From Takakia lepidozioides (Eukaryota; Plantae; Bryophyta), in contig CM060733.1 in assembly GCA_030704615.1 (NCBI GenBank), positions 51,274,001-51,338,000 of the forward strand: a stretch of DNA of 64,000 bases, given 5' to 3'. A model generated the notes under the pieces. The model had not been told where the DNA came from. It did no database searches and saw only the letters and a program-made list of their open reading frames with translations. Shown here piece by piece: positions 1-51,552 of the stretch; position 1 is the first letter of the stretch; every line of letters begins with the position of its first letter. Position numbers and translations under genes: made by a program.

Positions 1-2911
1 CCTCGAGTTCCCTGCTGAGTGATTGTAAGCAGATGTAGGAAATGCCAGCCCATGCTCGTTCAGACGTTCTCTGTGGAGACTCTTGCAACAGCCCACTTTC
101 GAACCAACTGTCAGGACTGCAAACTGAAGCTCCTGACTGTTCCTTGTATCCATCCAGGACTGTTCCTGAGAGGTGCTTTGATCACCTGAAGGCCTATTCA
201 GCTCAGAAGGCAAGTTTTGCAGTTCCTGTCTTGGGGCAATCAAGTACTTCAACATATTGTATGTAGTTTTTGCCCTAAATTCGACACAGCTTCAAAATCT
301 GGTCTAAATGTAGCGGATGGGAAAAGGAACTAAGTCCTATTTTTTGGTGTTTCCGGAAACAAATGGGCAAGATCTGGATCCGAAAGGTCAAGGTCTAGCC
401 ACCCTCTCAACAACATCTCCTCCTGGAAATGCAAGGGAGGTGTGACTGGGGGAGCCGCCTTTAGAAGCTCCTCAAATGTTGAGCGGTCTCCATAGGCTTT
501 TACCACTGCCAAAGCTGCCCTTGCTGCGCTCTCATCCACTAAAGGGGATGGCCTCTTCAGACTCACAGACTCTGAGCTGCTTTCCCGAGATTTCATCTGG
601 GGAGAAGACTCTGAACCACTTTGTGTTGCTTGATTGTTACCCATCTGGATCTTCTTCCTTGCCCAGCCTCTGGAGTAAGTGAAGTAGGACGCGTGTGCCT
701 ATCCAATCTGGTGTGAACCAACAGTCCCTGCAAAGCCAACTGACAAAGAATATTATAGCAGGATCGATCCAAAGCTTGTCTAGAAAAAAGAAGCTGTGTG
801 AAAATTTCCAAAACACTCTCCTCCTGGGCAGAAATGTCCAGTATAAAACTGCAGCCACCAACAACCACAACTTGTGAAGACATTCTTCACGGTAACGCCC
901 AAACAGTGATGCCAAGTCTCTGTGTCTGTGTTATATGTTCTTTGAAAGTACAAAATTTCTGGAGCAGGCTACACCTCAAATGTTATACAGGCAAGCATGA
1001 GAACTGCAAAAAGCAAATTGGCCAAACATCCAACTGGCCAAGTGATGCAAATGAGAGAGAGGAAGAGAGAGCGAGAGCTGGCCAGGAGAACAAAAACTAG
1101 GGTTTACATTGTTTCTACATATCCATGTGACATGCATGCTTACTGTGTCAAATGGCACATGGATTATGAACCCTTTATAGTTTACGAACCCTAGATGAGC
1201 GACAACAGCACCCTGGTTCCAGCTCTTTAACAAAAGCAACCCTACAATCTCAAGAACTCCGCATGGTCGGTCTATGGATTGCTAATCCACGCCAGTTCCA
1301 TGCTGCAATTAAATCGAGCCATTGAGACAAGCTTGTTCCCTTTCGAGAAAAGGGATGTCCACCTTCAGCTCAAAAGCTTGATGTCATGGGAGTGTAATTA
1401 GGTTCTAATACCATCACTGTCCAATTGAGTCCTTCACCGATTCAACACACAAATCAGCGGGCAAGAGAAGGAGAAGTAAAAATACCCGAAACAACTTAAT
1501 ACTTCATCATCCTACAGCCACACCGCTTTGTCTAATAATACATTCAGTGCCACAAATGTGAGTGCAAGAGATAGAGAAGCACAATGTCCAGAACAACTTC
1601 ACAATCTACCGTCACACCTCCGGTCATTCATCGAAACAGAAGGGAAACAGAAGTACAATTCCACAAAAAAAAACTTCAGCCTCCATCAACCTCCCGGGGC
1701 TTACACAACATTAGACAAACACCATCAAGAGGAAAACACAGACCTGCACTTGTTGAGATCCGATCGTGTTTAATCATCGAATCAACAATTTCCAGCTTTT
1801 GTCAACTGAATGTTCGGAACGTCGCCCGTTTGCAAGCAGCTAAACTTTCGTCTCTCTCTCTCTTTCCAGACAAACAGCCCGCCGCTCGGGGCCCATTCTC
1901 GTACACAATACACTGGAATTTTTATTATTTTTCCATGAAAATCGACAAAAAAGAACAGTAACTGTTCAGGGACCGTCCCTACCAGGGTTCGAACCCGGGG
2001 GCACGTCCTACCATATCCATCACCGGCGTTTTCCGGTAGCAAGCGGAAGTAGGCCCGCGACGGGCCGGCGACAGGCTACTCCCGGTGGCTGTAGGCAGGA
2101 AGAAGTTATGCGCCACCTGCACATCAGGTCACCCCAGTAGTCGCCGTTTCAAATAACTTAAAAAAGTAAGCAAAATTCTGATATCCATTTCTGGAAAATA
2201 AAATATTGTCAAATAATAATGTTTCAAACAGGGGCAGTTAGGTTAGAGTGAAGGTAACCAGATATGGTTAGCCAGACGTCAAGAGCATATTCCTAATCAG
2301 CGCAATTTATATTCTGTTCCCATTATCCAGGGCGCACGTAGACCGTCAGATGTGGATTTAACGGTCACGATATGGGGGGGCAAAGCAGCCAAATAAAGGG
2401 GTAAAGAAGGGGTCGGGGTGACCGATGTGCGCCACGTCAGCCGGAGTCACATGAACACCCGCTAAAAATCTCAGGGCCACCGAGTATCACCGGTGGTTGC
2501 AGGGGGCGACCGGGTGTGGCCAGCGCTGCAGTTCGTCCGCCGGAAGAAGCCGGTCAACTCGCCGCAGCAACTTCCTCGCTCTCATTCTCCCTCGCGCGCT
2601 CTCGCGTCGCCATCGCTTCTCGTCTCGGAGCTCTCGGATCTGCGCTTGTGGAGGTCTACCGCTTCAGTTCTTACGCTGCTCTGCTCCTTCTTTTGCTGCT
2701 TCTCGTCCTTTTTTTTCCCGGTTTTTTGTTGGCTTGGAAGAAGGCGGAGGAGCCGTTTGTCGGAGTACCTAGATCTCAGTAGGTCGGGTCTTTTACATAT
2801 CTCGTTTGCGCCGTCTGCGTGTTTTTTCGGTGCTGGTTTAAGAGTGCGCTGGAGCGGTTTGTGCACGAAGATCAAGGTAGGTCTGTGTGACGGGAGAGAA
2901 GACAGAGGAGA

Positions 2912-5900
2912 ATGAGTTACGCAGGCGAAGACGATGGCGCAGGCAGGCCTAAGCTTAGTCTGCAGCCTCGTGGATCTACTGCTGATGCGACGTCAGCCCC
3001 AGCAAAGTCCAGTAAGGTGCGCTTGTACTCTACCTTGGAGAGGGGGAACTCTGATATAGCTTGGAATGTTGAAAAGTATGTCTTGTTGGCTTCGTGGTTT
3101 TGAGTGGGATCCGCGTCTTTCCGGTGGTTTGGTAATATTTTGGAGCTATGGTTGGCGCTGGACGTCTGAGAATTCTCCAATGCATTGGGAACATGAAGTT
3201 CCTCTCAAGTGTAGGATCTTAGAGATCATGGTCTGCGTAGGGTCTGTTAACATACTTTGGGGGACCTATTTGACCTGAGGTCCAGAGTTGTGCTGTTGGA
3301 GTCGAATAGTTTTTGAACCACCTATAGTTATTGTCAAACCAGATGTCGCCGCATCATGTTCTAATAGTTCTTCTCTTGTCAGCCAGTCAAAGACGTCTTT
3401 GCACCGGGCTGTTGGGCTTGTACCCTTGTCACCATATAGATAAGGCAGCAGTACAATTTATATCATAGTCCATACAGTTTCTACAAGACAACTTGTTTGA
3501 AAAAGGAAGGTTTTGGATGTGAGCATCTATCCTACAGCCAGGTGCATGTTTTTCTTGGTTGTCTGTTCTTGTTCTTTGACATGTATTTTTATCTTCCTGC
3601 ATCTCCCAAATACTTTTTCCATATTGTCACACAATTGAGATTCTGAAATAGGCTGACACTTCCAAGTATAGCTGGCAGCAAAATGCCAGCAGTTGTGGAG
3701 TGATTGTGGAAGTAATGGTTTATGGTGTTGGATTGCAGCCAAACCCATTTGGTCTTGCAAGACCCCGGGAGCAAGTGATTGCAGAGAGAGAAGGAAAGAA
3801 GGAGACTGAGGTCCTAAAGGAGCAAGCCCAGAAGGAATGGAAGCCCAACGTAAGGCCGCCATCTTCATGGCCCTGGTTTTTTCTCGACTCTGCAAACTTT
3901 GTATTTCTATTTTGAGGTAGCTGCTGCTCTCTGGTAGATTTGGGATGCTAAACTGGCCATCCTGAAATACAGGGGACGCACTAAGTTTTCAAGGGGGAAA
4001 GTGTTGGTTCTTCATTAATTCTGTGATGTTGATTTTCTCAACAGTGTCTAACAATCACTACATTCACAGATGAAGGCAAACCAGCAGATGGAATCAGAAA
4101 CAGATTAGCTAGAGGATTATTGTCCTTAGAATTAACCTGCTTTATGTGAATGGGAGGTTGGAGATAAATTCAGGGGTCAACTAATCATGCAATAGAAAAG
4201 AATTTTCAGGCTCCCCGTGTTATCCCTCCTAGCAACTGGAATTGTAGGAGTCTGTGTTAGATGATTCAAGTTTGCTGTTCTAGTAAATGCGACTTGCTCA
4301 CTTACTGTACTGCAAAACACTCGGGCGTGAAGGAGAGAATCTGGCTGGTGGTGAACTACAGGTGCTCCTATGTGAGCAGCTCAAAGTCGTGGTATGTTGT
4401 AGACAGGCTGAATATATTGTCTTTTCATGGGGGGCATCATTGTATTTACTGAGTAAGTATCCACTACCAAGAAGCATCTTAAGAAAATGCGTGCTTGACT
4501 TGAAACTGCAGATTGTGTTGACTGAACAACAACGTGAAGAGAAAAAAGCAGCAGAAGGAGAGTTAGCATTTGCCAAGAGTGAGCTGGATAAGGAGGTGGA
4601 CCCTGTGAAGTCTAAAGCACTGAAAGATGAGATGCTGTCTATGGAGAAGAAACTGGATGAGCTCCTGCTATCTTTTGAGGTGCATTTCTCTCACATAGGG
4701 GATGTATTCTATTGGTGTAACAGCATAGTTACTTTTCTATGGTCTCCCACCAATGATTGGAATTGAGAGTTGTCCTTGAGCTGACAGGGACATGTTCTAA
4801 TTAAGAACCCTTCCTAGAACTCTTGAACAATGATCAATTTCTGAATGTATGCTGCAATTGAACGTTCGTGCACGTTTTGGTGCACTCTTTGTGCACACTA
4901 TTCTATCTTTGCTCATCGGGACATTTTAGCTTCCACTGCTCACAGGATTAGAGTACTCAATATTTGAGTGGGTTCTTCACTGTCTACTTATTTATTTGCA
5001 AACAGTGCCAAATGATGATGAGATAGTTTTGCCAGACTCTTCAGGTTTTGTTGTGGACTACAATGTTAAGGTGGGAGGTCAGGGATTTATGGTTTTGTTG
5101 TCTTATTTGTTATGTTGATGTCAATGAGAAGGAGAAGACCAATCCTAAGGGACAATTTTTTTTACTCTTCAACCTGGAGACCATCTGTTGGCACTGACTG
5201 GGCTTCCAGTTCATCGGGGTCCAGGCTCCGAGTGCGCAATGTTCCTTGCATCTTTTAGAGTTCATATGGACAGAAATTGTTGTTCCACTAATTGGAGAGT
5301 CTGAGTGTTCTGCAGAAAATGGCTGTCCAAACAGCACAGTCGGGTGGGGCAAGGCGCCCCCGTCGGGAGGAAGAACGTGCACCTGCTGCGGCAGCCGCCC
5401 CTCTCTATGGTGGTGGCGGTGGTGAGGCAGAAGGGTACGGAAACTTCAGTAGGGGCCGCGAACGTGACGGTGGCAGGGGCAGCTCATATGGTGATACTTG
5501 GGGAGGAGCTAAGAGCAAGGCCGGTGGGGAAGGATGCTACAACTGTGGAGAGGTTTGTGCTGCCTCACTTCAAGCTTGGGGCTGTCTGGCTTGGTGTGGT
5601 GATTTTGTACAAATGTGGTTTCAGTCTTTTCAGTTTTACTAGAACTTGGTACTGCTTAGATTAGGAGGAGGCATTTACAGCTCTCAGTCCTCTGATACTG
5701 AGAGTCACAAGGAAGGGTTGTTGGTGTTTTAGCAATTAAGTGCTACTCTGTGGCTGCTTTAGATCTTCAGAATTTTTGGGTGCGTTGTGAGTGAGGTCAG
5801 ATGCAATGGTAGCTATTAGCAGCTCACCATGATGAACTTAAAAGACGTAAGCTTTGCAATATGGTAATGTCAATCTCTTGGATTGATATGAAGACTATCT

Positions 5901-7462: not shown

Positions 7463-10400
7463 TTATTCAGGTTTGCGAGCTGAGAGTATAATAAAACTTC
7501 CACGACGGATGGAACTGTAATCCACAAGTCCACATATTTGGCAAAGCTCCTCCAGCTCTGCTTCATCCCAATATCTCAATGAGCTGCTTGATGCTGCTCG
7601 CTTGATTACCTGCCATGCAAAGGCGTCCAGCAGTGCAAAAATTACAAAACAAAAAACATATTCCTTCTGAGAATTGCAACAGGAGAGAGAGAGAGAGAGA
7701 GAGAGAAATGAAATGAAATGGTGTGTTAAAACGTCCGCGGAAAGCTCATAGAGCTTATGGGACAAAATGGAAAGAAAAACATGAGAGAAAACAGGAAGCC
7801 AGAGAGATGAGAACTATTGTTCTAGTGATTGTCTAAGGGTGAATGCCTCGTGCAGGTAAGCTGCCAAACATTTCTGATCTTCATAGTGAAAGACCTCAGT
7901 GAGAGATTGGGTCAGAGAGAGAAAGAGAGAAAGAGACTACCGGAACTCTCAGGAAAATGTCATAACCCCACAGTAAACCATCGGACCTGATGTCACCATG
8001 TGCGGTGAGAAACAACCTCTAATGGGTGTCAGTCTGCATACTTTACTTCACACAGAAGCAACTAATCCAATTCTGACACTGGGAGCACAAGATGGGAACA
8101 GAACAGACCTAATCCTTGACACAGGGATGACAAGGAAATAATCTGCCACTCGCCTCATGTGGAAACTGGATGGAGGAAAGGTTCCTATTAAGGATTAGTC
8201 TTCAATGGATGAAACTTGAAAGGGCAAAACAACCAAACTGTGGTTGCAGGGTGTTGAGCCCGATGATGTTTAGAAGATCAACCGGTGGATGAAGAGGCTG
8301 TCCAATCTGGTTGGTCTAAACGTAGCCAGCACCAGCAGCTGGTGAGGTGGAGGTGAGTGGCAGCACAAGTTTTGATACTTGTTACTGTGGACATCCCTCG
8401 CAGGGAAGTCCACTCCACAAAGTAACCATTGTGACTGGCCCACTGTTTCACATCTCGCGCAAACAGGGTTACCCACACATGGTGCCACAGTATACCTTAT
8501 CATCATCTGAAGACCCAAGCACATGTGCATGTGAACCCATCCACGCCAGAGAACCTACAAGCTAAAACCATTAGGTACTCAAATTCAAGAGCATCCAGGG
8601 GCAACGTCACCCACAGCTCTCTGGTTTGTTTCTGTGGGACTTAAATACCACTAGGAATCCCATAAGGAATTTGCAGCATCTCCTGAAGAGCAATAGCTTA
8701 CCTGAGACTATTGCCGGTATAAGGCTAGTCTTCAGTGGTGTAAGAGCATCCCAAATTAGGAAGAGATGACTGCATTGAGACCTTGGAACCTAACAACTGT
8801 TGCAAGGAAAGGGCTCAGCCTTCACTATTACTCAATGAGCTAGTGAATGTGGCTCCCAATTCAAACACCAAAAAAGGGGGTGGCAGAGAAAGAGCATTTT
8901 TTCCCAAAAATAACCCGGTCACACACCTGGCGGAGAGGCAGGATGGCGTCTAGTACAGTAGATGGTGTTATAAAAGTGGTAGCCACAAACACGCCACCAG
9001 GTTTCAAAATCCGACTGATCTCTGACACCTGCAAAGGACTCCTGCTTTGTCAGAGCTCAGCATACTTCACCAACTTTGGCCATGTCTAGTGACCAGAAAA
9101 AAAGTTGCTTAAAAAGATCAAGCACAGTACAGTTGATAAGGGCAATTTTTGTACCCCAGCTGCGGGAGAGGGCCAGCAATGCAAAGCAGCCCCAGCATGC
9201 ACTGCATCGATCGTTCCTGTGGAAAATGGCAACCTAGCCACATCTGCTCTGACCAGTGCTATATTTCTGCCAAGCAAAACAACTCACCATCAGCATCATC
9301 ACACTGCTCAGATTTGTACTCCCTCCTAATTGCTCATTTGTACATCTCCGTGGCCCCTCTCTCTTTCTTGTCTCTTTCTTCCTCTTGTCCCATCAGCTCT
9401 ATTTAGCTTTCCACGGACATTATAAAGCACCAGTTCATTGCTGTCTGTGACTCAATATATTTGCTTCCCCCCACTTTCTTCTCTATTTTTCCTGCTTCAC
9501 TCAAACTGTGCCCAGGATGTGCAGGGCCAATGTGCTACATAGCAACGGTCCATTAATTACTTTGCTCGTTCTGCCTCTGTGTGCAACTCTGTGTGCTATA
9601 AAAAATGGAGAGACATACGCAGTGGAAAGGGAGCGATCTTGCTTGATGAACTCAAAAGACTGGCGGAGCATGTTCTCCGAAAAGTCAAGGGCAATAACAG
9701 CCTTGTAGTTTCCACTCTGAGCAAAGCGGCGGGTGAACAGGCCACTGCCACAGCTTACATCCAACAGGACCCCTCCTACTGTTGGCTTAAGGAAATCTTG
9801 TGCCATCTTCAACTGCACACAGCCACCCTTGCTTACGTATTAGACGATAGTCCACCTCACAAGGAACTGCAACATCTTGCCTGCCCATACATCTCAAATG
9901 ATGCAGCCAGCTGATTGTGATTGACTTATACGCAACGAAACTAGCAAAAGGATGAAGATACTCCCCGAATGGAGTGAGGGGCAGGAATTGTGGGCACCTC
10001 CTCATCCGGACCTGGGAAGCCACGGCTACTAAACCCTTGACGCCATCCTCGCTCATACACAAAGGAAACCCATGGACTCCTGCAACAGAAAAAGTTTACG
10101 GCATCAAGCTCACAACTCAGAACTCTGAAACTGCAGACCTTGCCAAAGCCGCAAAGGGACCTCTTCCAGGATGCAATGGAAATGAAAATGGGGCACTGAT
10201 AAACCTCTCTGAAAATATAACAACAAGCAGAGAAGGTGTGTCCTTCATGCCTCTGCTGCTTCCCAATCTCTGTACCATACACTCTGTTCATTCTCCCAGG
10301 AGCTCTCTGTTGGACGTACATGATTATGTTGGACAGGTACCAAGTGATTCTAAAACAAAATTCAAAGTAGAATGAAATTTGCCAACCTACATACCTCATA

Positions 10401-12033
10401 TGTACAGCAATTACCAATAATCAAACATCACAATATGTTTCATATGAGGAATCATCTCTGGCTTCTTTAGTCCATTCCACATTCCTAGGGCAACCTTGCA
10501 AATTACCAATCTCATTTCACCTCTTCTCTTCAGATCAAACGACCCCATGTAGAAGAATTATTCAGCATTTTACTTGTGACTTGAAGTGCGCGCAAAGGAA
10601 CTGCAACAAATTAGAAAATACCTGAATATTTCAGTGCCTGGTGTCAAAGTCTCCTGGTAGTCCCGCGATCCCGCCAAAATCGTGAGGTCAAGATAGACAT
10701 CCCTGGTTGAATACCCTTTCTTGCACCTTTTACACTGGAAACCTGACCTTGCTACTGCTGCTCTGCACACACCATATTAGCGCCAACCTCAATAATGACA
10801 AACTCAGGTCAAAATCCAATAAAAGCCATTGACACATTCACTTGAAATTAAACACCAACTGAAATTGTGCTGCTTTAGGACATGCATTCCCAAAAGCAGA
10901 CATTGAGAAGGTAAGCACACTCACTGGCTGAGGCCTGGAGGCCCTTTCCTTACAAGAGGCTCAAAGCATATTGGGCAACACAACAACTCAAGTGTCGTCT
11001 TTTCCTCTTTCTCAATGCTTGGCTCCTGCAATAATGTAAATTTAGTCAGGGCACTCCCAGACCCAGGAGATGATGAAGTGGTGATCATGCTGAAAGTGAA
11101 ACTAAAAGGCAAGATGATGACAAGTTGTCTGTAGCTTAGATTACTTCTGCAGCATGAAATGCCTCTTGAGTCCGAAAACAGCAGTAGATATTGCTATGGA
11201 AATATGTCAACAGGGAAAACCAGTGGAGGGAACTTTTATCATGAAACTTTCTTTTATTTCAGGGAAATTACGTGATCCAATTGAAGAAACTTTTATCATG
11301 AAACTTTCTTTTATTTCAGGGAAATTACGTGATCCAATTGAAGAAACTTTTTCCTCATTGACTATATGTTTTGCTAGCCTTCTACTTTAGTGTTATATGG
11401 GAATGTTACATCTCCCTCTGTGTTCTTTGCAGTTATGACGTTTATCGGCACATGAGATATCGGAAAATTCACAGTAGTGATTTTCCTCTATTTCGATACT
11501 AGGTCCGCACTGAGGGAAAAACTACTGGCCCATTCGCTACCAGAACTTTCTCATTTTGGCCAGTCTTAATCCGATTGTTTGTGATTCTTGCGGTGTGCCT
11601 TTCCTGCAAAACTCTCATAGGGAAGTGCCAGAGTATGCGTCCGTCAAATTCACTGGTGTCATCGCATTCTTCACGTGTATAATGTTCAGACTGGACTTCA
11701 TGGAACCAGATATTATAATCGTGCAGACGATTCATCTCTTCAAGAAATTGACAATTGAGAGCGCCTTCCAGCAAAAGCCGTAAGAACACACAATAAACGG
11801 CTTCAAATCCAGTGATCAAACAAAGAATCACAGATACCTACAGAATTGACGACCGACAATGTAGCGAAAGTCCTCACAGCTCGCCTTCCCGAATCGCAGC
11901 TCAATCTTGCAGCTGCGTTGCTGCTAAATTGAAATTGCAAGTGCACGACAGAAGAGAGCGAAAATTCCCTTGAAGAAACGCAAGAGCGCCGCACCAGGGG
12001 CGAGGATGAAATCAGCTGAGCGTGTGTTGCCAT
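7463..12033 (-). CDS. Chloroplast/plastoglobule class I SAM-dependent methyltransferase (Methyltransf_11, At2g41040-like), about 8 exons
   Basis: Transit-peptide-like exon 1 from ATG 12033, then LCCPICFEPL, FQCKRCKKGYS, SFVYERGWRQGF..GFPGPDEE, VLLDVSCGSGLFTRRF (SAM motif I), LDFSENML, RADVARLPF, HAGAALHCWPSP, EISRILKPGGVFVATTF; stop at 7463. Confidence 0.9.
7698..7924 (-). mobile_element. 5'-truncated LINE copy (about 210 bp, 3' end) in last intron of methyltransferase
   Basis: Clearly alignable with 13960-14162 (end of ORF2 plus 3'UTR). (CATTT)n tail; AGAGAGAGAAA on both sides (7698-7708, 7914-7924). Confidence 0.85.
11231..11350. repeat. Perfect 57-bp tandem duplication in methyltransferase intron 1
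   Basis: aacttttatcatgaaactttcttttatttcagggaaattacgtgatccaattgaaga occurs twice head-to-tail. Confidence 0.9.
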
Positions 12034-12140
12034 CCCCACCACCGTCGTAGCAATAGGCAGAAAGAGTGTGAAAGTCCTCCAGAAATCTCAGCCTTTGCAG
12101 TTGTGGCGTCCGCTGTTCTCACTGCAAGCAAACGTCCAAC

Positions 12141-12203
12141 TCTCATAGGCTCTTTGAGCTTTGAGCCGACGCTATTAACTACCATTTCATTTCATTTCAT
12201 TCC
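12141..12203 (+). mobile_element. Diverged 3'-end fragment of the (CATTT)n-tailed LINE family
   Basis: cataggctc-ttt-gagctt hairpin followed by ...gacgctattaactaccatttcatttcatttc; same layout as the 3' end of the 13952-15000 element. Confidence 0.6.
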
Positions 12204-12453
12204 TCAATGACGGCGTCGTAGAGAATGTAACGGCGTCCAACTTGACTAGATCGAGGAAGAAGTGAAGTGTGGACAAGACGACGACGGCGTCGATCGAGCG
12301 CAAATGGCTTGCTGCCATGCAAACACAGACAAAACTGCCGACGCCCTCACACCCTCACCCTCACCGACATCGATGAGCGTTTCTAGGACAGGCCACGTTA
12401 CATTTGAGAAACTCACCACGTCTCAAGGAATGCACTCTTTTCTTTCTTCCACG

Positions 12454-12499
12454 GAGCTTTCCGCGGACGTTATAAAGTACTAGTTCATTTCACTTCTTT
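12454..12499 (+). mobile_element. LINE 3'-end fragment
   Basis: gagctttccgcggacgttataaag is the exact reverse complement of 12881-12904; followed by a degenerate ttcatttc tail. Confidence 0.75.
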
Positions 12500-12763
12500 C
12501 ACCGACTGTTGGTATGTTTCATACCGTTCAAATGTATGTAATCAACGCTTGAATTTGGTGAGGGGCCCTTGAGTGCAGGAGCGGTTGCACATGACGATCC
12601 CAAAGCACGTGATGGAGGAAGCTCCAGATCGGTCTTCATGGCACAGAGTCTCCTAGTTGTTGAGAAATGTACATAAATCCTCTTTGTCCAATTGGAGTCC
12701 GAGGGACTTCTTTCTAAAGAGGAATTCTCCAAGAAGGTTCTTGCATTGCGGCAGTCTTGAAAC

Positions 12764-15700
12764 ATGGTAAGCTGCTCTATGTCCCCGCTTTGTCTCCACG
12801 AATGTTGTTGAAATTGAGAGCGAATTTTCAGATTACGTGGTGATGCAGTTTGGCACAAAGAGAAATGAAATGAAATGGTGCTTTATAACGTCCGCGGAAA
12901 GCTCATAGAGAGAGACTTTGACCTTTGGTTTGCTCATGAGGGGGTTGCAAAGATAGGCTAAGAACATGAACCCGTGGTGTCTGTAATCTTGATTGACTAA
13001 CTTCTATCTCTCTCTTCCACACATGCACACCTACCGCGATCATGGACGAGGACCAACATTGCTCACTGATACCTCTTAAGCAGGCTGAAGAGAATTATGC
13101 AAATCCTAAAACTGCCTTTTTCCACTCTTTGTTCAAGGTAATCTCACACCAGCGTGAGTCGCTCCTTGAGGACAACACATTGTATATTTGCGATGTGTCA
13201 GCTGCTTTTAGTACTCAAACAGCTTTGTTTACAATATATCACAGACGGTTGATTTATTTCAGGTGCACGCAAAAAAATTGAAAATATATGCTTGTCCAAC
13301 AATGCAGGTTGCCGCAGTAGTATTCTACATCTTATGCACTTTCGTCTCGTCCAGCTACATCATACACTTTGTGGTCACAGTGGTTTTGGTCGCCTTCGAC
13401 TTCTGGACGGTGAAGAATGTGAGTGGCAGGATCTTGGTGGGGCTCAGATGGTGGAATGAAAGCAATGAGCACGGTGAGAGTTCGTGGAGGTTCGAATCCC
13501 TCGATCCACAGGTGAGTTCTGTGGTTTGCATGGTAGTGAGTGTTGACAAGCTTCCTCTAATCAAAGATCTCTGCTATTGCAAGTTGACATTGGATCTCAT
13601 CAAGTAGATGAAAATTGTGATGGGTTTGGCTTCTGAAATGACTTTTGCATTGCTGCTGGGGCCATACCAAGACAACAGAGTATGAATTAACTTATGTGAA
13701 TGTAACCTCGTTTTGTGAAAGCAGTCAATGGAGCACCTCAACAAAAAGGACTCGGGGCTTTTCTGGTGGGCCCTATACATAAATGTATGTTGCAGGTTCT
13801 TTCTCAGATTTACTCTTTCGAAGTAGGAAGTGTGCTGTAAACAGTAGAACGTTTTGCCCTTTTTTAGTGATTCCACACTGAAATTTGTGTGCATTTGTAA
13901 TCTATCAGTCAAAGGTAGGTTTCTCCATGAGCACATAAAATCTGCTTAAGAGGGAGAGAAATGAAATGGAGCTTTATAACGTCCACGGAAAGCTCATAGA
14001 GCTTATGGGACAAAATGGAAGAAAACATGAGAGAGGAACAAATCCAGAAACCAAGAATAACAATTAATGTTCTAGCGATTGTCTAAGGGTGAAGGCCTCG
14101 TGCAGGTAGGCTGCCAAGCATTTTTTATCCTCATAGTGGAAGACATCAGTGAGAGTTTGGGTTCCACTGAATAAACAGTGGAATCTCCCACGGATCTCGT
14201 AGTATAGAGGGCAGTAGAAGAAGAAGTGTTCTTCAGTTTCAATTTCCTGGCTGCGCCCTATGCAAGCTGGACATAGGCAGTCCTCCCGTTGCAGGTTTTC
14301 CCATCTGCCAGTCTCTATCCGTAGGTTGTGGGAACCCACCCTGAACCGCCCCAATGCCCTCAGGAGGGAAGGAGATAAGGATGCTGAAAGGTAATTTGGT
14401 CTCAAGATTCTATCATCGCGGAGCACCAAGAATGTCTCTCGATAGAAGTGGAGCTTTGTCGTGAGATTGGGTAGCTTCCAAGTTCTCTTGACATGTAATT
14501 CCATAAGCTCTCTCCTAATGAGTCTGTTGCGGTCATGTCTGGATGTGATGTCCACCTCATCTGGATTCATTGGTAATAGGAAAGCAGTAGAGAGTCCGTT
14601 GCGTTGAAATAAACTGTCCACTCGAGCATACCAGGAGTTCCTGAAACCTGCAGCTTTGAGCCTCATAGATGTTGTGAGGGCCCTTGCCACGAGCGCCTTG
14701 GGTGGAAGGACCTGTAATCTATGGAGAAAGACTGTAAGCCGGAAGACGACCTCGGATTGCAATGGTACACATGCGAACTCTGCACCTAGGATCTGAGATG
14801 GAGTTGTGCTCCTGGCGGCAAGCATTGCTTGGAGAAAAGATGACTGTAATGGTTCCAGATTCTTTTCCCACCAGGAGACAGGGACACCAGGTGCCCAGAA
14901 CTCACAACCATAGATGGTAGCAGGGCTGACGACGGTGTCAAACAGCCACTTTTTGGTTGGGGGATGACGCAGATGTATGACGCAGACGCGGGGAGAGAAA
15001 GAGAATGGAAGGAACTTTATAATGTCCGCAGGATGCTCAAAGGGACCAACATCAATCTCTGTCGGGATAAGCTCCTTTTGTGCATCAGAAAGAGAAGTTC
15101 TCTTTTTATTATTTGTTGTCAAGCTCATGGTCATTGTTAGCAGGGTTGCCACACGTACAAGATCTTGGTGCCCCAGCTTTCATATTGTGGAGTGTCTACC
15201 CATCGGCGTTGATATGAATTACCTTGCATCTGATCAGGGATTCCACATAGGAGGATGTCAAAGGAGTGAGATGTGTCCATCACTGGTAAGGGTTTTAGAC
15301 TATGAGAACTTCTATAGGAGTACCTCATATCTCTGAGCTCCTTTTATGCTGTGATGTGAGTGGCAACGCCTTGCGGGTGTCACAGGCAGCTGTTTGGATT
15401 GTGCTGGGACTTGTGGCCCTCTTGAAACTTAACTTTGACTACCTATTGATAGTGGCTGTTGCCGTAACTCTGAACAGTGCCAACATTGCCGGTTACACAA
15501 AGTGCCGGAAAGGTATATGTCATTCTCATACGGCTCCTTCTGCATGCTTTGCAAATTTTAACTGCACTGGGGATGCTCAATCGCTTTCTCTTTCTCTACT
15601 CTTTTCCGAGATGTCATTCAACTTCAAAGGGATTTTGTGCACTGAGCTTCATGGGAAGGCTTTGCCACAGCTGGAATCAGTATGAAAACTGTTACAGAAT

Positions 15701-21175: not shown

Positions 21176-24100
21176 TTATGTGCTTCTATCCCGCTGCATA
21201 AGTGTATTCACCTCGTTGAAACTCATGGTGGCCTGGTAAATGAAGATGTCGCGTTTGGGATCACAAATCATTCTGTTCAGGAAGATAAAATAAAGATGCT
21301 TGCAGGGTACAAATTTGTCTCTCTTTCCCAAACTTGTTGATAGCATGTCAACAAAATCAGGACAGGTGCAGTTGGGGAAATTTGAAACTGTGATGTCGTA
21401 CAATCTGTCATGGATAGCAGATGTAGAGGTCATCATAGTGTAGATCCGACCATACCCAGGATCTGCAACTTCCGTATGTGCCTGCAACACGTCCTAAAAG
21501 CATTCGAGCGGATTCCACCTTGCCGAAGTGCTCGGCAGTTGGAGGGAAACGACGTACTACCTTCCCATTTCTTTTTGTTGGCCATGCATCTGGGTTCGCT
21601 GGTGGCACTCTAGAACTTCTTGAAGTGGAAGCACTTGCACGCACAGAGGCTTCTCGCTGAAGGGAGAACCCTGCCTCCTCCAACATTGCGATCTCATGAC
21701 TTGTGAGATGTGTCCCCACCTTGACAGGCCAAACGCTCGGTGGAGGAGGCTTCATGACCACTGATGGTCGCACGGTCCCACGCACACACCTACCACAGTC
21801 GTCAGCGCAGAACCAGATTTTGTGGTTTTTTGCCTCTAGTTGCCCGTAAGGCTGGAACAAACCGGTGAAGGTCGGTGCCGGAGTGTAGGCACTGCCTCTG
21901 GATATGAAGGACTTGCACTTCTCACGATTGGTGGCTCTGATTGCGGAGCACATCACTCGAGACCCAGCTCTGGTGTGTTCTATGTGCCACACTTCGTCGG
22001 AGCAGGTGGACTCCACCACAGGCGAGAGCACGCTGGACTCATTGACAGTGGGAGATGTTGACGTACTTTGTGAGAAACGTTGCTCCGCACTGGATATTCC
22101 ACAGTTGAACCTCTCATGCAATGGAACACGTGGAATGGAGAAGTTGTCCATGTCCGCCCTGTGCGAGTCTGCATCCAACCCAGGAAGGGTGTTCAATTTC
22201 CGTAAGAATCTCTCCTCGACCTCCAGATGGGGAACTCTGGACACCAGAGGAGTTCCCTCCGTACACATGCTGACAGCTCTGGCAATCTTGTTTGGATCCC
22301 CCGATCTTTTTGCAGCTCGCAACATCAACTCAGACTTGGCAGGGCCTTTGCCACCAACGCCACCCCTCAAGAAATCGCGATATCTCGTTTGTTGCTGCAG
22401 AGCTCGGATGAGATCATTTGCCGTCGCCAGATACAAATCCCGCCCCCGCTTTCCAGACTGCAACCATGCATTGTGCACTGTCTCCGCTAGATTGCAAGAG
22501 GGCATGTCCGCCATCTCCTCAATTGACAAGTGCTGCAGAAAGGGAAAACACACATCAGAACAAACAGGTACATCCCACGACAGCAGACATGATTGGAAAT
22601 GCATACAAAGCCAATGAGAATTCATAATCTGAAACTCAGATACCATTGTCATGCATGATCCCCATTATCTGTACCGGAAGTGCCAAAATGCTAGCCAGTC
22701 TTCCAGCGCTCTCATACTGTCTTCTGATACTGCCCTAGATGAGAACCACTAGGCACGAATTGACTGGAACAAAGTATTCGCCTCCGCCATGCTTTTGGCA
22801 TCTTTGTACTGTTTGCATAGCTTAAGATGAATTGGCCGCATGTCCGGTTTGATGTCTGCCTTGGTATGTTTCTCAAGGGACTGCGTCCAATGGAAAAGAT
22901 ATGTTCGCTCTCTTCCTGGCATTGGCACTTTTGGATCTTCTGAACCGAACACAATGCGAACAGCATTGAAATTTGCTTGAGCATTGTCGGCCAGTTATCA
23001 AATATAAGGAAACAGTTCTGCAGATCGTCATCCTTTTGCATGCGCTTGACAAGACTCACTCCGCTGTCCTCCCCGACTGTCGACATTTTGAAATTGTACA
23101 CTTTGTTGGATCCTTGACCTGGAAACACGCTGTCTTGAATGTAGTCGTACATGCTCTGAGACTTCAATTCCAAAATGTTATCAATATACCCTCTGTTTGC
23201 AGAGTCCATCCTCAATGCATTCACCTGGTTTCTAATGTTCGGTGAGCTCAAGGTTGAGAAGTGATCCATAACATTGTCCAAGGCACGCCCCTCCAGCTTC
23301 CTGCCCACAGAGTCCCCTACACTCAGAATATGGCTTTCCAGGAAACTCTTGCTTGCTCCAAGCATAATTGCGGAGGCGGTGGCTGTTGGATTGCTCTCGT
23401 ACTCTTGTCTTATCAACTTTGATATTGTTTGAACATTCTCCTTGCAATCCCCCTTCGCCACAAGATGGTTGTGGAATCCGAAATGTACACAGGCTCTAGT
23501 CATGTTTTTTAAACGGTGAACAACATAGTACTTACGTGCTGCACACACTGCCAGACAGGAAGGTGCTTGTTTGCAAAACTTGCAAACAAAAGTGTTGGAG
23601 CTTGGAGGTGCTTCACCGGGTTTGAATAGATTTTCGGCAACACCCTCCCACTCGCACTGGTTGTGAACCTTCAACCGCTGGAAATGCCTACAATTCAAAT
23701 TCTCGCACATCAGGTGCCCATTGCACAGGCTTCTCCGAAAGACGAGGTTGTCATGATTTTGAATATTGGATGTTTTCGTTCTACACCACGGGTGTCCATC
23801 TCCTCTCTTGTCCATTCCCTGCATGATGCTCGTGACGGGTCCATCCCGCCCAGGTGGAGGTAGCTCGAAGACGACATCCCCATCGTAAGCATCCGGCAAA
23901 AACTCCACACACTCAATAGGGACAGTCTCCCAGTCAATCCCCCGCAATTCACTCTGGAAACCGGGCATTCCTCCCATTGACTTCAGTTTAGGAATGACAC
24001 TGATGAGGTGTGCCACTTGCGGCTTCACACAAATTGGGATGCTGGGAACGTCCTCGGAGGAGGAGTCTGAGTGCTCAACTATTGGGGTGGAAGTAGTGGT

Positions 24101-24505
24101 CTCCGTTTTCACGACGATATTCCTTTTCTCTTGAGCAACAGAACCAGCTGTTCCCGGGGAGACATACGAACCAGTGGACTGCCGCCAAGGAGCTCTGACG
24201 ACCATGTATCTTCCTGGAGGCACTCTCCACTGACTCACAAGAGAATTTTCATCCGGCTTCTGAAATGAGTACTTGATCAACTTCCCATGGACATCGTAAA
24301 CCTCTCTTTCGAGGAAAACAGTGCCAATCTGGTACTCGAAACGCGTTGCCAAGAGATGTTCTTGCGCAATTGTGTTACCATTGGAATCGGCATCCTTCGA
24401 GAAAGGGACAGGCTTCTCCACAGAGTAAAACTCCGCTTCACACAAACCCATGGTGAAAGACAAATAATTCCGAGCTAGACGGAGTTCGAAAGTGGAGAGG
24501 CCCAC
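21176..24505 (-). mobile_element. Inactivated Mutator-like (MULE) transposase gene: GCM-like Zn domain, DDE core, Cys-rich domain, SWIM finger
   Basis: CNGHLMCENLNC..CKFC..CAARKYY..HFGFHNH (GCM/WRKY-like); IFD/LADNAQANFNAVRIVF..RTYLFHW (MULE-type D..[C]xxH); intron about 22535-22643; NLAETVHNAW (catalytic E region); NCTCPDF..PCKHLYF (SWIM). Frameshifts near 22995 and 21490, in-frame stops near 22750 and 22667. Confidence 0.8.
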
Positions 24506-36470: not shown

Positions 36471-36655
36471 ATTGATTGTGGAAGCGGTGGCGGAATCAGT
36501 TGGAGTGGTTTGAGATGGAAGAGGGGACAAAGAGGGCGGGAGGTAAGGCGGCTGTGGAGGAAGTGTGAGGATGGGGAGGAGGTGACGTGTTGGGAGCGGC
36601 GAAGAAATGAGGGAGGTTAGTGGGTGAGTGTACTTGTGTAACGCTGCGGAAGGCT

Positions 36656-38494
36656 ATGGGGAGCCAGGTAAGCACCATTAAAGCAGCAGCAGGGAAGCTG
36701 GCGCCTGAATCGAAAAGGAAAGGCAACAAAGTCGAGAAGGCGAAGATTGGGATTCTTGCCTTTGAAGTAGCCAATGTGATGTCCAAGAGTATGCAACTCT
36801 GGCAATCGCTCAGTGATCATGAAATCCTTAGACTCCGCACTGAGGTGATAAAAGCAGAGGGCGTGTTGAACTTGGTTTCTGATAATGAAGCTGTGCTGCT
36901 TAGCCTTGCTTGCATGGAGAAGCTGCAGGATTTGACGGCGGTAGCAAGTGCAGTTGCTCGTCTTGGTCAGCGATGTCAAGAGCCAGCATTGCAGGGATTC
37001 GAGCATGTCTACAATGATGTCTTGAAGCAGAGTATTGATGTGCGAGCCCTGGAATTTCCATGCAGGGAAATGGAATCAAAAGTGAAGAAGATGGAGCGTT
37101 ATATTGCATCTACTGCCAGCCTTTATCAGGAGTTGGAGATTCTTGCGGATCTAGAGCAAGCCTGTCGGAGATTGCAGGACGACGAGGATGGCGCTCAAAG
37201 TGAGACATTGAATGCTTTGGAGCAGAAGGCAATGTGGCAGCGGCAAGAGATTAAGTGTGTACGAGACCTGTCTCTATGGAATCGCACTTATGACAAGGTT
37301 GTCGGTCTATTGGCGCGGACTGTATGCACTATTCATGGAAGAATTGTGGGTGTATTTGGGTCTCCCATGCTTGGTTTGTCCCAAACGATTCCGCTCCAAC
37401 CGAATGGTGAGTCTTGCAACTTTGCTGCTTTTCGCAGTTCTTACTCGTCAAGCTCGCAAGCGGCATCACTAAGCCCGCGACTGTCTCATCCTGCCCAAGG
37501 TGTGGAAGCCTTGAATCCAGATTCTACTTGTAGCATAGATGCTGTCTCGCAGCCGGCAACTCCTCCTCCGGGGTCAAGTGCCAATGCTGACGATGGTGGT
37601 GCAGGCTATATCATAGCCAGCTTATCCTCCCAAAATGCTTCTGGGGCATGTGAACTTCGACCATCCCCCTCTCCAAATCTCTCTTCCGGCCCCCATATTA
37701 CACAAACTAGAAGTTCTTTTGTTTGTTATTCGCCTAATTATCAAAATGCAACGGGTGCTCTTCCAGGGGGATCCTTATCCTCAGAAAGTTCCCAGATTCA
37801 TATTGCAGAAAGGTCCCAGACAGCATCACTGCAGGCAGAAAACACCGAGTCATTTACTTCGGCTCTCCTGTATGTGACCAGTCATAGTATGCAACCAGGG
37901 CATCGCACACCGAACTCTGTACATCAGAATGGCCGCAATATGAGACTGCTCTTTGACCCTAAAAGTAGGCATCAGATGGCGCCTTGGTCAACCTTGGGAG
38001 GAGCTGCACTAGCACTTCACTATGCCAATGTGATCATTATCATTGAGAAGATGATACAGTACCCCCACCTTATTGCTCACGATGCTCGTGAGGATCTCTA
38101 TCGCATGCTCCCAAATACTGTTCGCATGGCTTTACGTTCGAGGCTACGAGCAACCATGAAATTGTGTGAACGCAGCAAGTTTGACTCTGGGATCGCGGCA
38201 GATTGGAAGGAGGCATTGGAGAGAATTTTGGGTTGGCTAGCACCACTCGCGCACAACATGATTCGATGGCAGTCAGAGCACAACTTTGAGCAGCAGCAAG
38301 TGGTGTCACGGACCAATGTACTTCTGCTGCAGACCCTTTACTTTGCAGACCTAGTGAAGACGGAGGCAGCCATCACTGAGTTGCTTGTGGGCTTGAACTA
38401 CATCTGTGGTTATGAGCAAGGAAACAAATGCGACTCTCTGATTGAGTACACGAACAACAAAGATTCAGAAGAGTATCTTGACTGGCGGTTTTAG
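36656..38494 (+). CDS. PSK SIMULATOR-family protein (DUF3475 + DUF668), intronless CDS
   Basis: MGSQVS start (possible N-myristoylation), KIGILAFEVANVMSK (DUF3475), STLGGAALALHYANVIIIIEK..AREDLYRMLP (DUF668), WLAPLAHNMIRWQSEHNFEQQ, LLLQTLYFAD. Confidence 0.93.
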   Translation: MGSQVSTIKAAAGKLAPESKRKGNKVEKAKIGILAFEVANVMSKSMQLWQSLSDHEILRLRTEVIKAEGVLNLVSDNEAVLLSLACMEKLQDLTAVASAVARLGQRCQEPALQGFEHVYNDVLKQSIDVRALEFPCREMESKVKKMERYIASTASLYQELEILADLEQACRRLQDDEDGAQSETLNALEQKAMWQRQEIKCVRDLSLWNRTYDKVVGLLARTVCTIHGRIVGVFGSPMLGLSQTIPLQPNGESCNFAAFRSSYSSSSQAASLSPRLSHPAQGVEALNPDSTCSIDAVSQPATPPPGSSANADDGGAGYIIASLSSQNASGACELRPSPSPNLSSGPHITQTRSSFVCYSPNYQNATGALPGGSLSSESSQIHIAERSQTASLQAENTESFTSALLYVTSHSMQPGHRTPNSVHQNGRNMRLLFDPKSRHQMAPWSTLGGAALALHYANVIIIIEKMIQYPHLIAHDAREDLYRMLPNTVRMALRSRLRATMKLCERSKFDSGIAADWKEALERILGWLAPLAHNMIRWQSEHNFEQQQVVSRTNVLLLQTLYFADLVKTEAAITELLVGLNYICGYEQGNKCDSLIEYTNNKDSEEYLDWRF

Positions 38495-39705
38495 TCCACC
38501 TTACTTGGCAACAGGGCTCAGGGGAAGGGGGGAACAGGACGTGTATTCTATTGCAATCTCTCACAGTAGCTTCTATCAATTTTTTCTGAAACCTTGACCT
38601 TATGCTCTTTGTTTAGCTGTGATACTAATAAAAACAGTCATAAAGCACATGACATTTTTTGTCACAAACTGATGAGGGGTCATGGTTCATGAAAGAACGG
38701 CTACAGAGGTGATGATGAGCTTTATACCCAGTTGTGAGCCTCTCCTCCAAAAGCCTTGTTGACTCTCTGTTTTTATAAATATTGTGTTTGTAATTTTGGC
38801 AGAACTTGTGCACACTTGTAATAGTTCTTTGATCAGTCAAAATGAACTCCAACCTGTCCCATGGTGGTGAGTATATCCGACCAACTTGATTCAGTCAGTG
38901 TGGCTGCATTGTATGCTCTATGTTTCTATTATCTGATTCTGCTATGCAGTCAAACAGACTATAAAGATTAGAGGCCTGCTGTTCCTTCAGTGACATTCTC
39001 CCCTAGCTCGATCCAATTATTGGATCATGTTGAAAGCATGTGCATGGTTGATGGGCCGGAACTCCATCCTCAGTAACACATTATGACAGCCTCTTGGTTC
39101 AATCTGGCTGCCCTCAGAGAACTGAAGGAGGATTGTAGCACTTCTGAAGCGAGTGTGGTCATAACACATAAAGATCAACACCCAGACTGCCTTCTTGTTG
39201 CTTTGAGGGTGTGATTTGGATCCCAAGCAAGCTGTGGACAAAGATCCTTTTATAGTGCCTTGATCCTTGATGCAGGGGCCGCAAGGACTAGTTATCTTGT
39301 GCTTTTGGTAAAGCTGAATCATGGCCGCATCTCCAGTATGTCTGTGCTGTGCTAGTATACTAGATTGCTCCATCTTCGTGACTGTATCATTCCTTAATGC
39401 TCCACAACTGCTACTGAAGGGCATTGTCCAGACTGCAGACTACTGCATCCCACATCAACAATGTCATTCCAGCCTTCAACTGTGATCCCTCCACAGACAC
39501 ATGAATGGAACCAAAGAGAGTTCCTAAATTGTCGCATGATGGTGGAGGGGTCACTGTTTCATCCGAGAGGGATTGATGAATGAGTTTGGGATTGTGAGCA
39601 GTTGAAGACCAACCACCCCTTCGGACCCCGCCCTTGCACTGATCGCGTGCGCAGACAGACAGGGAGGGAGGGAGGGAGGGAGGGAGGGAGGACGGGGGCA
39701 GGGTG

Positions 39706-51358: not shown

Positions 51359-51552
51359 TGCATCTCAAAATGAGGTATGTCTTTTTGGGATTGTATCTGG
51401 TATGCTTGAGAGAGAGAGAGAGAGAGATCTCCTTTGTGGATATACTTTGTGAATGTTCCTGCATCTCAAAATGAGCTATGTCTTTTTGGATTGTATCTGG
51501 TATGCTTGAGAGAGAGAGCTCACCCAGGATATGCTTTGTGAATGTCCTTGCA
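51359..51552. repeat. 101-bp-period tandem duplication of the SmD2 start codon and donor
   Basis: tgcatctcaaaatgagGTatgtc... at 51359 versus tgcatctcaaaatgagCTatgtc... at 51460. Confidence 0.9.

Follow-up and report, generated by a model that had tools for sequence, protein, structure and literature searches.

Where does a long interspersed nuclear element (LINE) insert in a moss genome, and does it choose the place? The question is raised by a 64-kb stretch of Takakia lepidozioides DNA (hereafter the window; GenBank assembly GCA_030704615.1, contig CM060733.1, positions 51,274,001 to 51,338,000), in which copies of one LINE 3′ end with a tail of CATTT repeats lie close together and often run into pyrimidine-rich DNA. 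All copy counts and junction statistics given below refer to this single window. In summary, I conclude with a probability of about 65% that one LINE family with a (CATTT)n tail prefers short TTTCTCT-like pyrimidine sites and is integrated there by target-primed reverse transcription. TC repeats and polypyrimidine tracts would be favoured because they offer the motif many times, but they would not be obligatory. The same explanation holds that the insertions (copies A to G in Table 1) are seven events independent of each other, or six if copy F is counted as seeded by copy G, and that all of them are 5′-truncated.

How many copies are there? The two longest copies were compared with the window by blastn, and a 48-nt nhmmer profile of the common end was run over it. 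Seven copies of one LINE 3′ end were found, all of them within positions 7706-15044 (about 7.4 kb), with nhmmer E values from 1e-17 to 8.5e-10. The other 56 kb of the window hold no further copy, the next best nhmmer match having an E value of 1.3. The preliminary description of this DNA had counted six copies. All six were found again, while copy B had been missed. Two further sites at which CATTT is followed by CTCT, at 4685 (+) and 17426 (-), lack the box described below and the rest of the end, and were rejected as chance matches. The copies share their 3′ end, start at different points and measure from about 40 bp to 1.03 kb. Thus, the pattern is one of variable 5′ truncation and not that of a short interspersed nuclear element (SINE) with a fixed head. 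Copy E is 95% identical to copy F, and copies B and C are the most diverged by blastn (77-83%). The start of copy B at 9361 is an alignment edge, and the true start may lie a few bases upstream. Copy A comprises the last 27 codons of the second open reading frame (ORF2), the hairpin and box of the 3′ untranslated region (UTR), and a tail at 7706-7720. Its protein homology by tblastn is limited to residues 279-305.

What do the junctions look like? The two longest copies, A and F, are flanked by target-site duplications (TSDs) of 11 nt (TTTCTCTCTCT on the element strand, AGAGAGAGAAA on the plus strand) and 10 nt (TTTCTCTCCC and GGGAGAGAAA, respectively). That these two duplications are nearly identical had been stated before, and they read as first given. 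With 31 offsets allowed, a 10-nt repeat would arise at both junctions by chance with a probability of about 3e-5. Copy E has a 5-nt duplication, TCTCT, and no TSD is recognisable for copies B, C, and G. The tail runs into TTTCTC in copies A, E, and F, just as described for the copies first listed at 7698, 12860, and 13952, and into ATTCTC in copy G. CTCT directly follows the tail in four of the seven copies. Its background frequency after TT is 0.64% (0.0064) of the window positions, which gives P = 6e-8. When F and G are taken as one event, the count is three of six (P = 5e-6). Flanks with ten pyrimidines out of ten occur in three of the seven copies (P = 7e-6). In every TC-associated case, in the moss as well as in the lycophyte Diphasiastrum discussed below, the pyrimidine strand is the sense strand of the element. 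The copy at 12454 (D) had been described as lying in TC-rich sequence. This holds for its flanks, but a TTTCTCT-like junction is largely lacking, and the case is ambiguous.

Is the TC run the target or a part of the tail? At its 5′ end, copy A adjoins a TC tract of 23 nt without LINE homology at the DNA or the protein level, and the match to copy F ends at this tract. Since TSDs are present and the 5′ tract of copy A lies outside the LINE homology, the TC run is taken as target and not as tail. The original view of the run as target was thus checked against a possible origin from the tail and is supported by both features. A permissive local alignment carried copy A past the TC tract. No protein homology stands behind this extension, and it was discarded.

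How might the element enter such a site? It is proposed that the element RNA ends with a hairpin closed by GUCC...GGAC, an A/U-rich box (GUUAUAAAG), and the (CAUUU)n tail, and that it would be integrated by target-primed reverse transcription where the element-sense strand reads (T)TTCTCT. The purine-rich opposite strand would be nicked after ...AGAGAAA-3′, and the nicked 3′ end would pair with UUU(C) of the RNA tail and prime cDNA synthesis. A second nick 5-11 nt downstream would produce the TSDs TTTCTCTCTCT, TTTCTCTCCC, and TCTCT. Reverse transcription would mostly abort within 40-200 nt. The motif would be rebuilt by the TSD, leaving a used site reusable. In copies A and F the TSD opens with TTT, the same three bases that close the tail unit, and continues with C, with which a further CATTT unit would start. 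Such a TTT(C) overlap of tail and TSD is expected if the nicked strand anneals to the tail. Pairing would account for TTTC only, and the following TCT may be due to the endonuclease or to another contact between the ORF2 protein and DNA. I infer the nick position, the tail-primer pairing, and the source of the specificity (endonuclease versus pairing) from these junctions.

The pair of copies F and G is instructive for the reuse of a site. The 5′ TSD of copy F starts 3 nt past the decayed tail of copy G, in the pyrimidine-rich 3′ flank of G, and the two copies are arranged head to tail. Before the insertion of F, the sequence consisted of the G tail, CTC, TTTCTCTCCC, and TCTTAAG. As the motif is restored by the TSD, a site can be used again, and this suffices for the head-to-tail stacking of F after G. 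As a separate observation, the 5′ junction of copy F has a 10-nt direct repeat, TCTGCGTCAT, with two units 3 nt apart at 14961-14989 (-). It may be a junction micro-duplication resulting from template switching.

Is the association with TC found elsewhere? A relative of the moss LINE resides in a 21-kb locus of the lycophyte Diphasiastrum complanatum (L008; CM055104.1:36791295-36812338), which carries a myosin gene. Three LINE copies are found in the myosin introns, with 41-57% amino acid identity to the C-terminus of the moss ORF2. In copy 3, which is on the minus strand, the 5′ end adjoins about (TC)36, and A(TC)27 follows the box at the 3′ end. Copy 1 has (TC)14 on its 5′ side, while its box is followed by CTTT repeats and then by (CT)n(CA)n(CG)n. 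Over their last 545 nt, copies 1 and 2 are 93% identical, and the two have a (CT)n(CA)n run in common. Copy 2 may be a segmental duplicate of copy 1. Each of the three copies abuts long (TC)n tracts, and the five long pure (TC)n tracts of the locus are all next to LINE ends. In the Diphasiastrum family, the TC run may serve as tail and target at once. Whichever applies, the sense-orientation association with TC recurs in a second lineage. The same locus also holds a more distant LINE of the same broad group at 1879-3882 (-), whose apurinic/apyrimidinic endonuclease-like (APE) and reverse transcriptase (RT) regions are 26-42% identical to those of algal relatives. Neither box nor tail was found downstream of it.

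How strong is the site preference? The preliminary description had proposed a LINE targeting GA/TC microsatellites. The enrichment of pyrimidines and CTCT after the tail and the lycophyte relatives in (TC)n speak for this idea, but what is seen is a preference and not specificity, as copies B, C, and largely D are without such flanks and many tracts are empty. Only copy A lies in a true array (at least 30 nt), while copies E and F lie in short motifs. Several points weigh against even the preference proposed here. Copies B and C have no TC flank (the tail of B reads CAGTTCATT and its 3′ flank, which is not TC-rich, GCTGTCTG), and D is ambiguous. About 40 other purine-only or pyrimidine-only tracts of at least 14 nt in the window have no insertion, and among the clean GA/TC repeats those at 1053, 1851, 36292, 40471, 51408 ((GA)10), and 51630 are empty. 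The sample is seven copies from one window, and the junction motif was picked after the data had been seen. Pairing between tail and primer reaches 3-4 nt (TTTC) at most, so the CTCT part needs a second, unobserved determinant. No endonuclease or RT of the moss family is present within the window. Finally, the density of TC motifs in the region from 7.6 to 15.1 kb is 2-3.5 times that of the window, which is partly owed to the copies and their TSDs. This local TC richness softens the junction statistics without removing their effect.

Could the element have no intrinsic preference at all? Insertions would then merely survive in TC-rich introns and promoters, and the CTCT junctions would be a small-sample or post-hoc effect. 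This is unlikely. The small number of copies, the ordinary flanks of B and C, the position of all copies in non-coding DNA in or between two genes, and the TC enrichment of the region (2-3.5 times the window average) would suit it, but CTCT at four of seven junctions stays very unlikely even at 3.5-fold local enrichment. It also leaves aside the near identity of the TSDs of A and F, the sense strand always being the pyrimidine one, and the same association arising independently in the lycophyte relative. The earlier suggestion that the element uses introns and promoters as safe havens is speculation; targeting is indistinguishable here from the survival of harmless insertions.

Conversely, does every new copy enter (TC)n? 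A strictly microsatellite-specific LINE of the Kibi type would do so, and the copies outside TC would be old ones with decayed flanks. The young copy E (95% identical to F) is found in a mere TCTCT, and copy F in TTTCTCTCCC, which is not a microsatellite, so that this is quite unlikely, although copy A is located in a TC array that measures 30 nt or more. Copies B and C, which have no TC flanks, are indeed the most diverged (77-83%), and long (TC)n runs lie on both sides of Diphasiastrum copies. However, the roughly 40 empty tracts of at least 14 nt, including (GA)10 at 51408, do not fit such strictness, nor does a tail of CATTT instead of TC. It is very unlikely, lastly, that the TC run belongs to the element as a composite tail, (CATTT)n + (CT)n, copied from the RNA or grown by slippage, with the LINE making the microsatellite. 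In favour of such a tail, CTTT and (TC)n repeats come immediately after the box in Diphasiastrum, a (TC)n(CA)n run is common to copies 1 and 2 of that species, and CTCT follows the tail in four moss copies. Against it, TC tracts are also found on the 5′ side of three copies (moss copy A, Diphasiastrum copies 1 and 3), and CTCT is part of the 10-11-nt TSDs of A and F. Beyond CTCT, copies A, E, F, and G have different flanks, and B and C are without any CT. An RNA-borne CTCT would still need TTTCTCT on the 5′ side of copy F by coincidence (4^-7).

The preference for TTTCTCT-like sites concerns the target, but what is conserved in the element itself? An alignment of eight ends from six families of a moss, a lycophyte, and other eukaryotes revealed an invariant GTC and GAC and a largely invariant TTA..AA box. 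The consensus of this 3′ module is a GUC...GAC hairpin, the box RUUA(A/U)(U)AAA(G/U), and a short-repeat tail that is specific to each family (Table 1). A hairpin was found in every family, both in single folds and in folds with an enforced GUC:GAC stem. Its inner helices differ (AAGCUC/GAGCUU, UGACC/GGUCA, AUGCC/GGCAU, GAGCCA/UGGCUC, GGGC/GCCC), and by inspection the pair flanking the closing stem also varies (U.G, U-A, G-C, C-G). With the stem enforced, five of the eight folds are better than at least 98% of interior shuffles (fraction of 0.02 or less), and two more are marginal. RNAalifold predicted no structure for the seven copies of the window, and an AAAGCUC stem, the first guess, was dropped since copies A and C do not preserve it. 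Only single folds and the comparison across families revealed the GUCC...GGAC hairpin. Judging from the sequences, the layout resembles that of the ‘stringent’ LINE type, and the 3′ end may be recognised by the RT.

To which group of LINEs does the family belong? Copy F has an open frame of 306 codons at 14064-14984 (-), which corresponds to the C-terminus of ORF2, and the ORF2 motifs quoted in the preliminary description are present in it. It was calculated from the codon make-up that such a frame has a 45% chance of being open at 2% neutral divergence and 14% at 5%. Recent activity had been deduced from this frame. The divergence is probably about 5% or less, but ‘recent’ is a weak inference only. 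With the 306-aa fragment as query, a word-index search of a protein collection that does not include this genome gave one match, while an exhaustive HMMER search gave 3,923 relatives, 334 of them with an E value of 1e-10 or less. The best named relatives of the ORF2 come from the ferns Adiantum nelumboides and Ceratopteris richardii, the lycophyte Diphasiastrum complanatum, Taxus chinensis, and the charophyte algae Coleochaete scutata (full-length 1,128-aa transcripts) and Klebsormidium nitens. In eight full-length relatives, the fragment matches roughly the final 300 residues, and these proteins have an N-terminal Exo_endo_phos domain and RVT_1 in the middle. Pfam has no match for the fragment, which is the part after the RT. 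The features of plant L1 elements are not found: neither zf-RVT nor RNase H was matched in the fragment or in the eight full-length relatives, and the tail is CATTT, not poly(A). Two relatives (L006 and L007) have an ORF1 upstream, in which no esterase or other Pfam domain was detected, a weak negative as the esterase is not universal in RTEX. The PDB matches are equally distant from human L1 ORF2p and R2. Searches of Pfam, a protein atlas, and PDB did not resolve the clade of the LINE, and metagenome scans yielded neither a match to the 3′ box pattern nor a protein-seeded relative. Judged by its relatives, the family probably belongs to an APE-type LINE lineage of old standing in streptophytes, distinct from the plant L1 type. 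A resemblance to RTEX/Crack-type elements had been suggested from the ORF2 motifs. The RTEX label is plausible by analogy, because green-algal RTEX families have short-repeat tails and elements in Marchantia and Ceratopteris have been labelled LINE/RTE-X. The contrast with the L1 and RTE elements of angiosperms, drawn at first, is moot, since the host is a moss-lineage bryophyte and RTE-X-labelled LINEs have already been reported in non-seed plants and green algae.

How does the family compare with known systems? APE-type LINEs that insert into TC, TTC, ACAY, AC, or TAA microsatellites are known from fish (Kibi and Koshi) and from insects and a snail (Waldo, Mino, and Dong) (PMC3812793). Like the Kibi group, moss copy A and Diphasiastrum copies 1 and 3 represent a LINE, probably of the APE type, with a simple repeat on both sides and a fixed orientation, and the target of Kibi is also TC. 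In contrast to that group, the moss family shows a preference, its tail (CATTT) differs from the target, and the host is a plant. Moreover, most copies (all but A) are not inside an array, and the family probably represents another lineage, Kibi being a member of the Tx1/L1 group.

RTEX-clade LINEs of green algae have short-repeat tails that are not poly(A) (PMC3747384, Table 3; the principle of 3′ end recognition is also discussed there), and some RTEX members have an ORF1 with an SGNH esterase (PMC3905857). The moss family resembles the green-algal RTEX elements in its green-lineage host, its short-repeat tail, and, in its relatives, the APE and RT in ORF2 with ORF1 upstream. Unlike in the esterase-bearing members, no esterase was detected in the ORF1 of the two relatives. 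No report of a target preference was found for the green-algal RTEX families or for those of Marchantia or Ceratopteris.

In the eel LINE UnaL2, a stringent element of the L2 clade, the RT recognises a 3′ stem-loop and the short repeat tail. The elements studied here likewise have a conserved hairpin just upstream of a short tandem-repeat tail, with a variable hairpin sequence and fixed closing pairs and box. In contrast to UnaL2, the clade and the motif are different, and recognition is suggested here by conservation only. The endonuclease of human L1 has the site TTTT/AA, and the poly(A) tail of L1 pairs with the nicked T-run. As in L1, the TSD of the moss copies starts with the bases of the tail end (TTT here, an A-run in L1), implying annealing of primer and tail. 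Unlike in L1, the tail is CATTT, and the motif continues into CTCT, which the tail cannot pair with. A literature survey of limited reach produced no report of a microsatellite-inserting or sequence-preferring LINE in plants, and nothing specific on Takakia and bryophyte LINEs.

What surrounds the copies? All seven lie inside 11.5% of the window (scan-statistic P = 1.4e-5, or 1.1e-4 with F and G as one event), and all are non-coding, in or between two divergently oriented genes. A perfect tandem duplication of 57 bp (2.1 copies, 100% identical) is present at 11231-11351, in non-coding DNA upstream of the methyltransferase-like exons. Farther away, ORFs of 414 and 597 aa are found at 21408-24505 (-). 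An (AGGG)8 microsatellite at 39661-39692 and the clean (GA)10 at 51408-51427 both lack a LINE insertion. A 624-aa single-exon gene (36620-38491) has its closest relatives in mosses, the best match being 71% identical over its full length, with 82% (partial) for Sphagnum and 60% for Physcomitrium. Thus, these relatives identify the host as a moss-lineage bryophyte.

Table 1. Positions of the LINE copies, the conserved 3′ module, and neighbouring genes. Positions without a locus name are those of the window; flanks are written on the element strand.
Feature	Position	Strand	Description	TSD positions	Flank after the tail	Tail
Copy A	7706-7903	-	about 200 bp, 5′-truncated 3′ end; blastn 84% to copy F	7698-7708 and 7904-7914	CTCTCTCTCT	(CATTT)3
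Copy A, 3′ flank	7683-7708	-	(GA)12 on the plus strand, (TC)n on the element strand (TRF)			
Copy A, 5′ flank	7904-7936	-	GA-rich tract beyond LINE homology; starts with the 11-nt 5′ TSD (7904-7914)			
Copy B	9361-9441	+	about 80 bp, degenerate 3′ end; nhmmer E 4e-12; blastn		GCTGTCTGTG	degenerate
Copy C	about 12114/12141-12201 (firm from 12141)	+	60-88 bp, diverged 3′ end; 3′ flank CCTCAATG		CCTCAATGAC	(CATTT)3.8
Copy D	12454-12495	+	about 42 bp, tail-proximal fragment; TC-rich flanks CTCTTTTCTTTCTTCC and CTTTCACC		CTTTCACCGA	degenerate
Copy E	12863-12910	-	48-bp fragment	12859-12863 and 12911-12915	CTCTTTGTGC	(CATTT)3
Copy F	13959-14990	-	1.03 kb, 5′-truncated; ORF2 C-terminus, 3′ UTR of about 100 nt	13952-13961 and 14991-15000	CTCTCCCTCT	(CATTT)2
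Copy G	15004-15044	-	about 41 bp, degenerate 3′ end; nhmmer E 8.5e-10 and alignment		CTCTTTCTCT	degenerate
3′ module, moss	13966-14013; 7719-7765	-	hairpin and box			CATTT
3′ module, relative L001	L001:2155-2203					ATCTT
3′ module, relative L002	L002:4198-4250					
3′ module, relative L003	L003:2423-2484					TAA
3′ module, relative L005	L005:2452-2504					ATTG
3′ module, relative L007	L007:5540-5586					GTAACA
Diphasiastrum LINE copies	L008:5059-6101; 8832-11274; 13232-14266		in myosin introns			CTTT/TC
Methyltransferase-like gene	9501-9818	-	Pfam match			
TVP23/DUF846 gene	13263-13607	+	Pfam match			

What do these results mean for the LINEs of plants? APE-type LINEs entering simple repeats are already known in animals, and the 3′ module shared across lineages and the lycophyte parallel add some interest. 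A wider idea is that a LINE lineage ranging from charophyte algae to gymnosperms has one 3′ module, and that pairing of the tail repeat steers integration into matching simple repeats and into the lineage's own earlier tails. I regard this as doubtful. If it is true, TC microsatellites would be renewable landing pads, which would explain dense tail-only clusters in one or two genes. The practical value is modest: repeats in the introns and promoters of bryophytes could be annotated better, and the origin of some GA/TC microsatellite loci could be explained. With the 3′ hairpin and box, such elements can easily be searched for, as can any SINEs that use the same module, and the family offers a natural case in which to ask what determines the site, the tail repeat or the endonuclease. 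A TC-preferring bryophyte family together with a lycophyte relative in (TC)n suggests that this target choice is old in a streptophyte LINE lineage that is apparently lacking in angiosperms.

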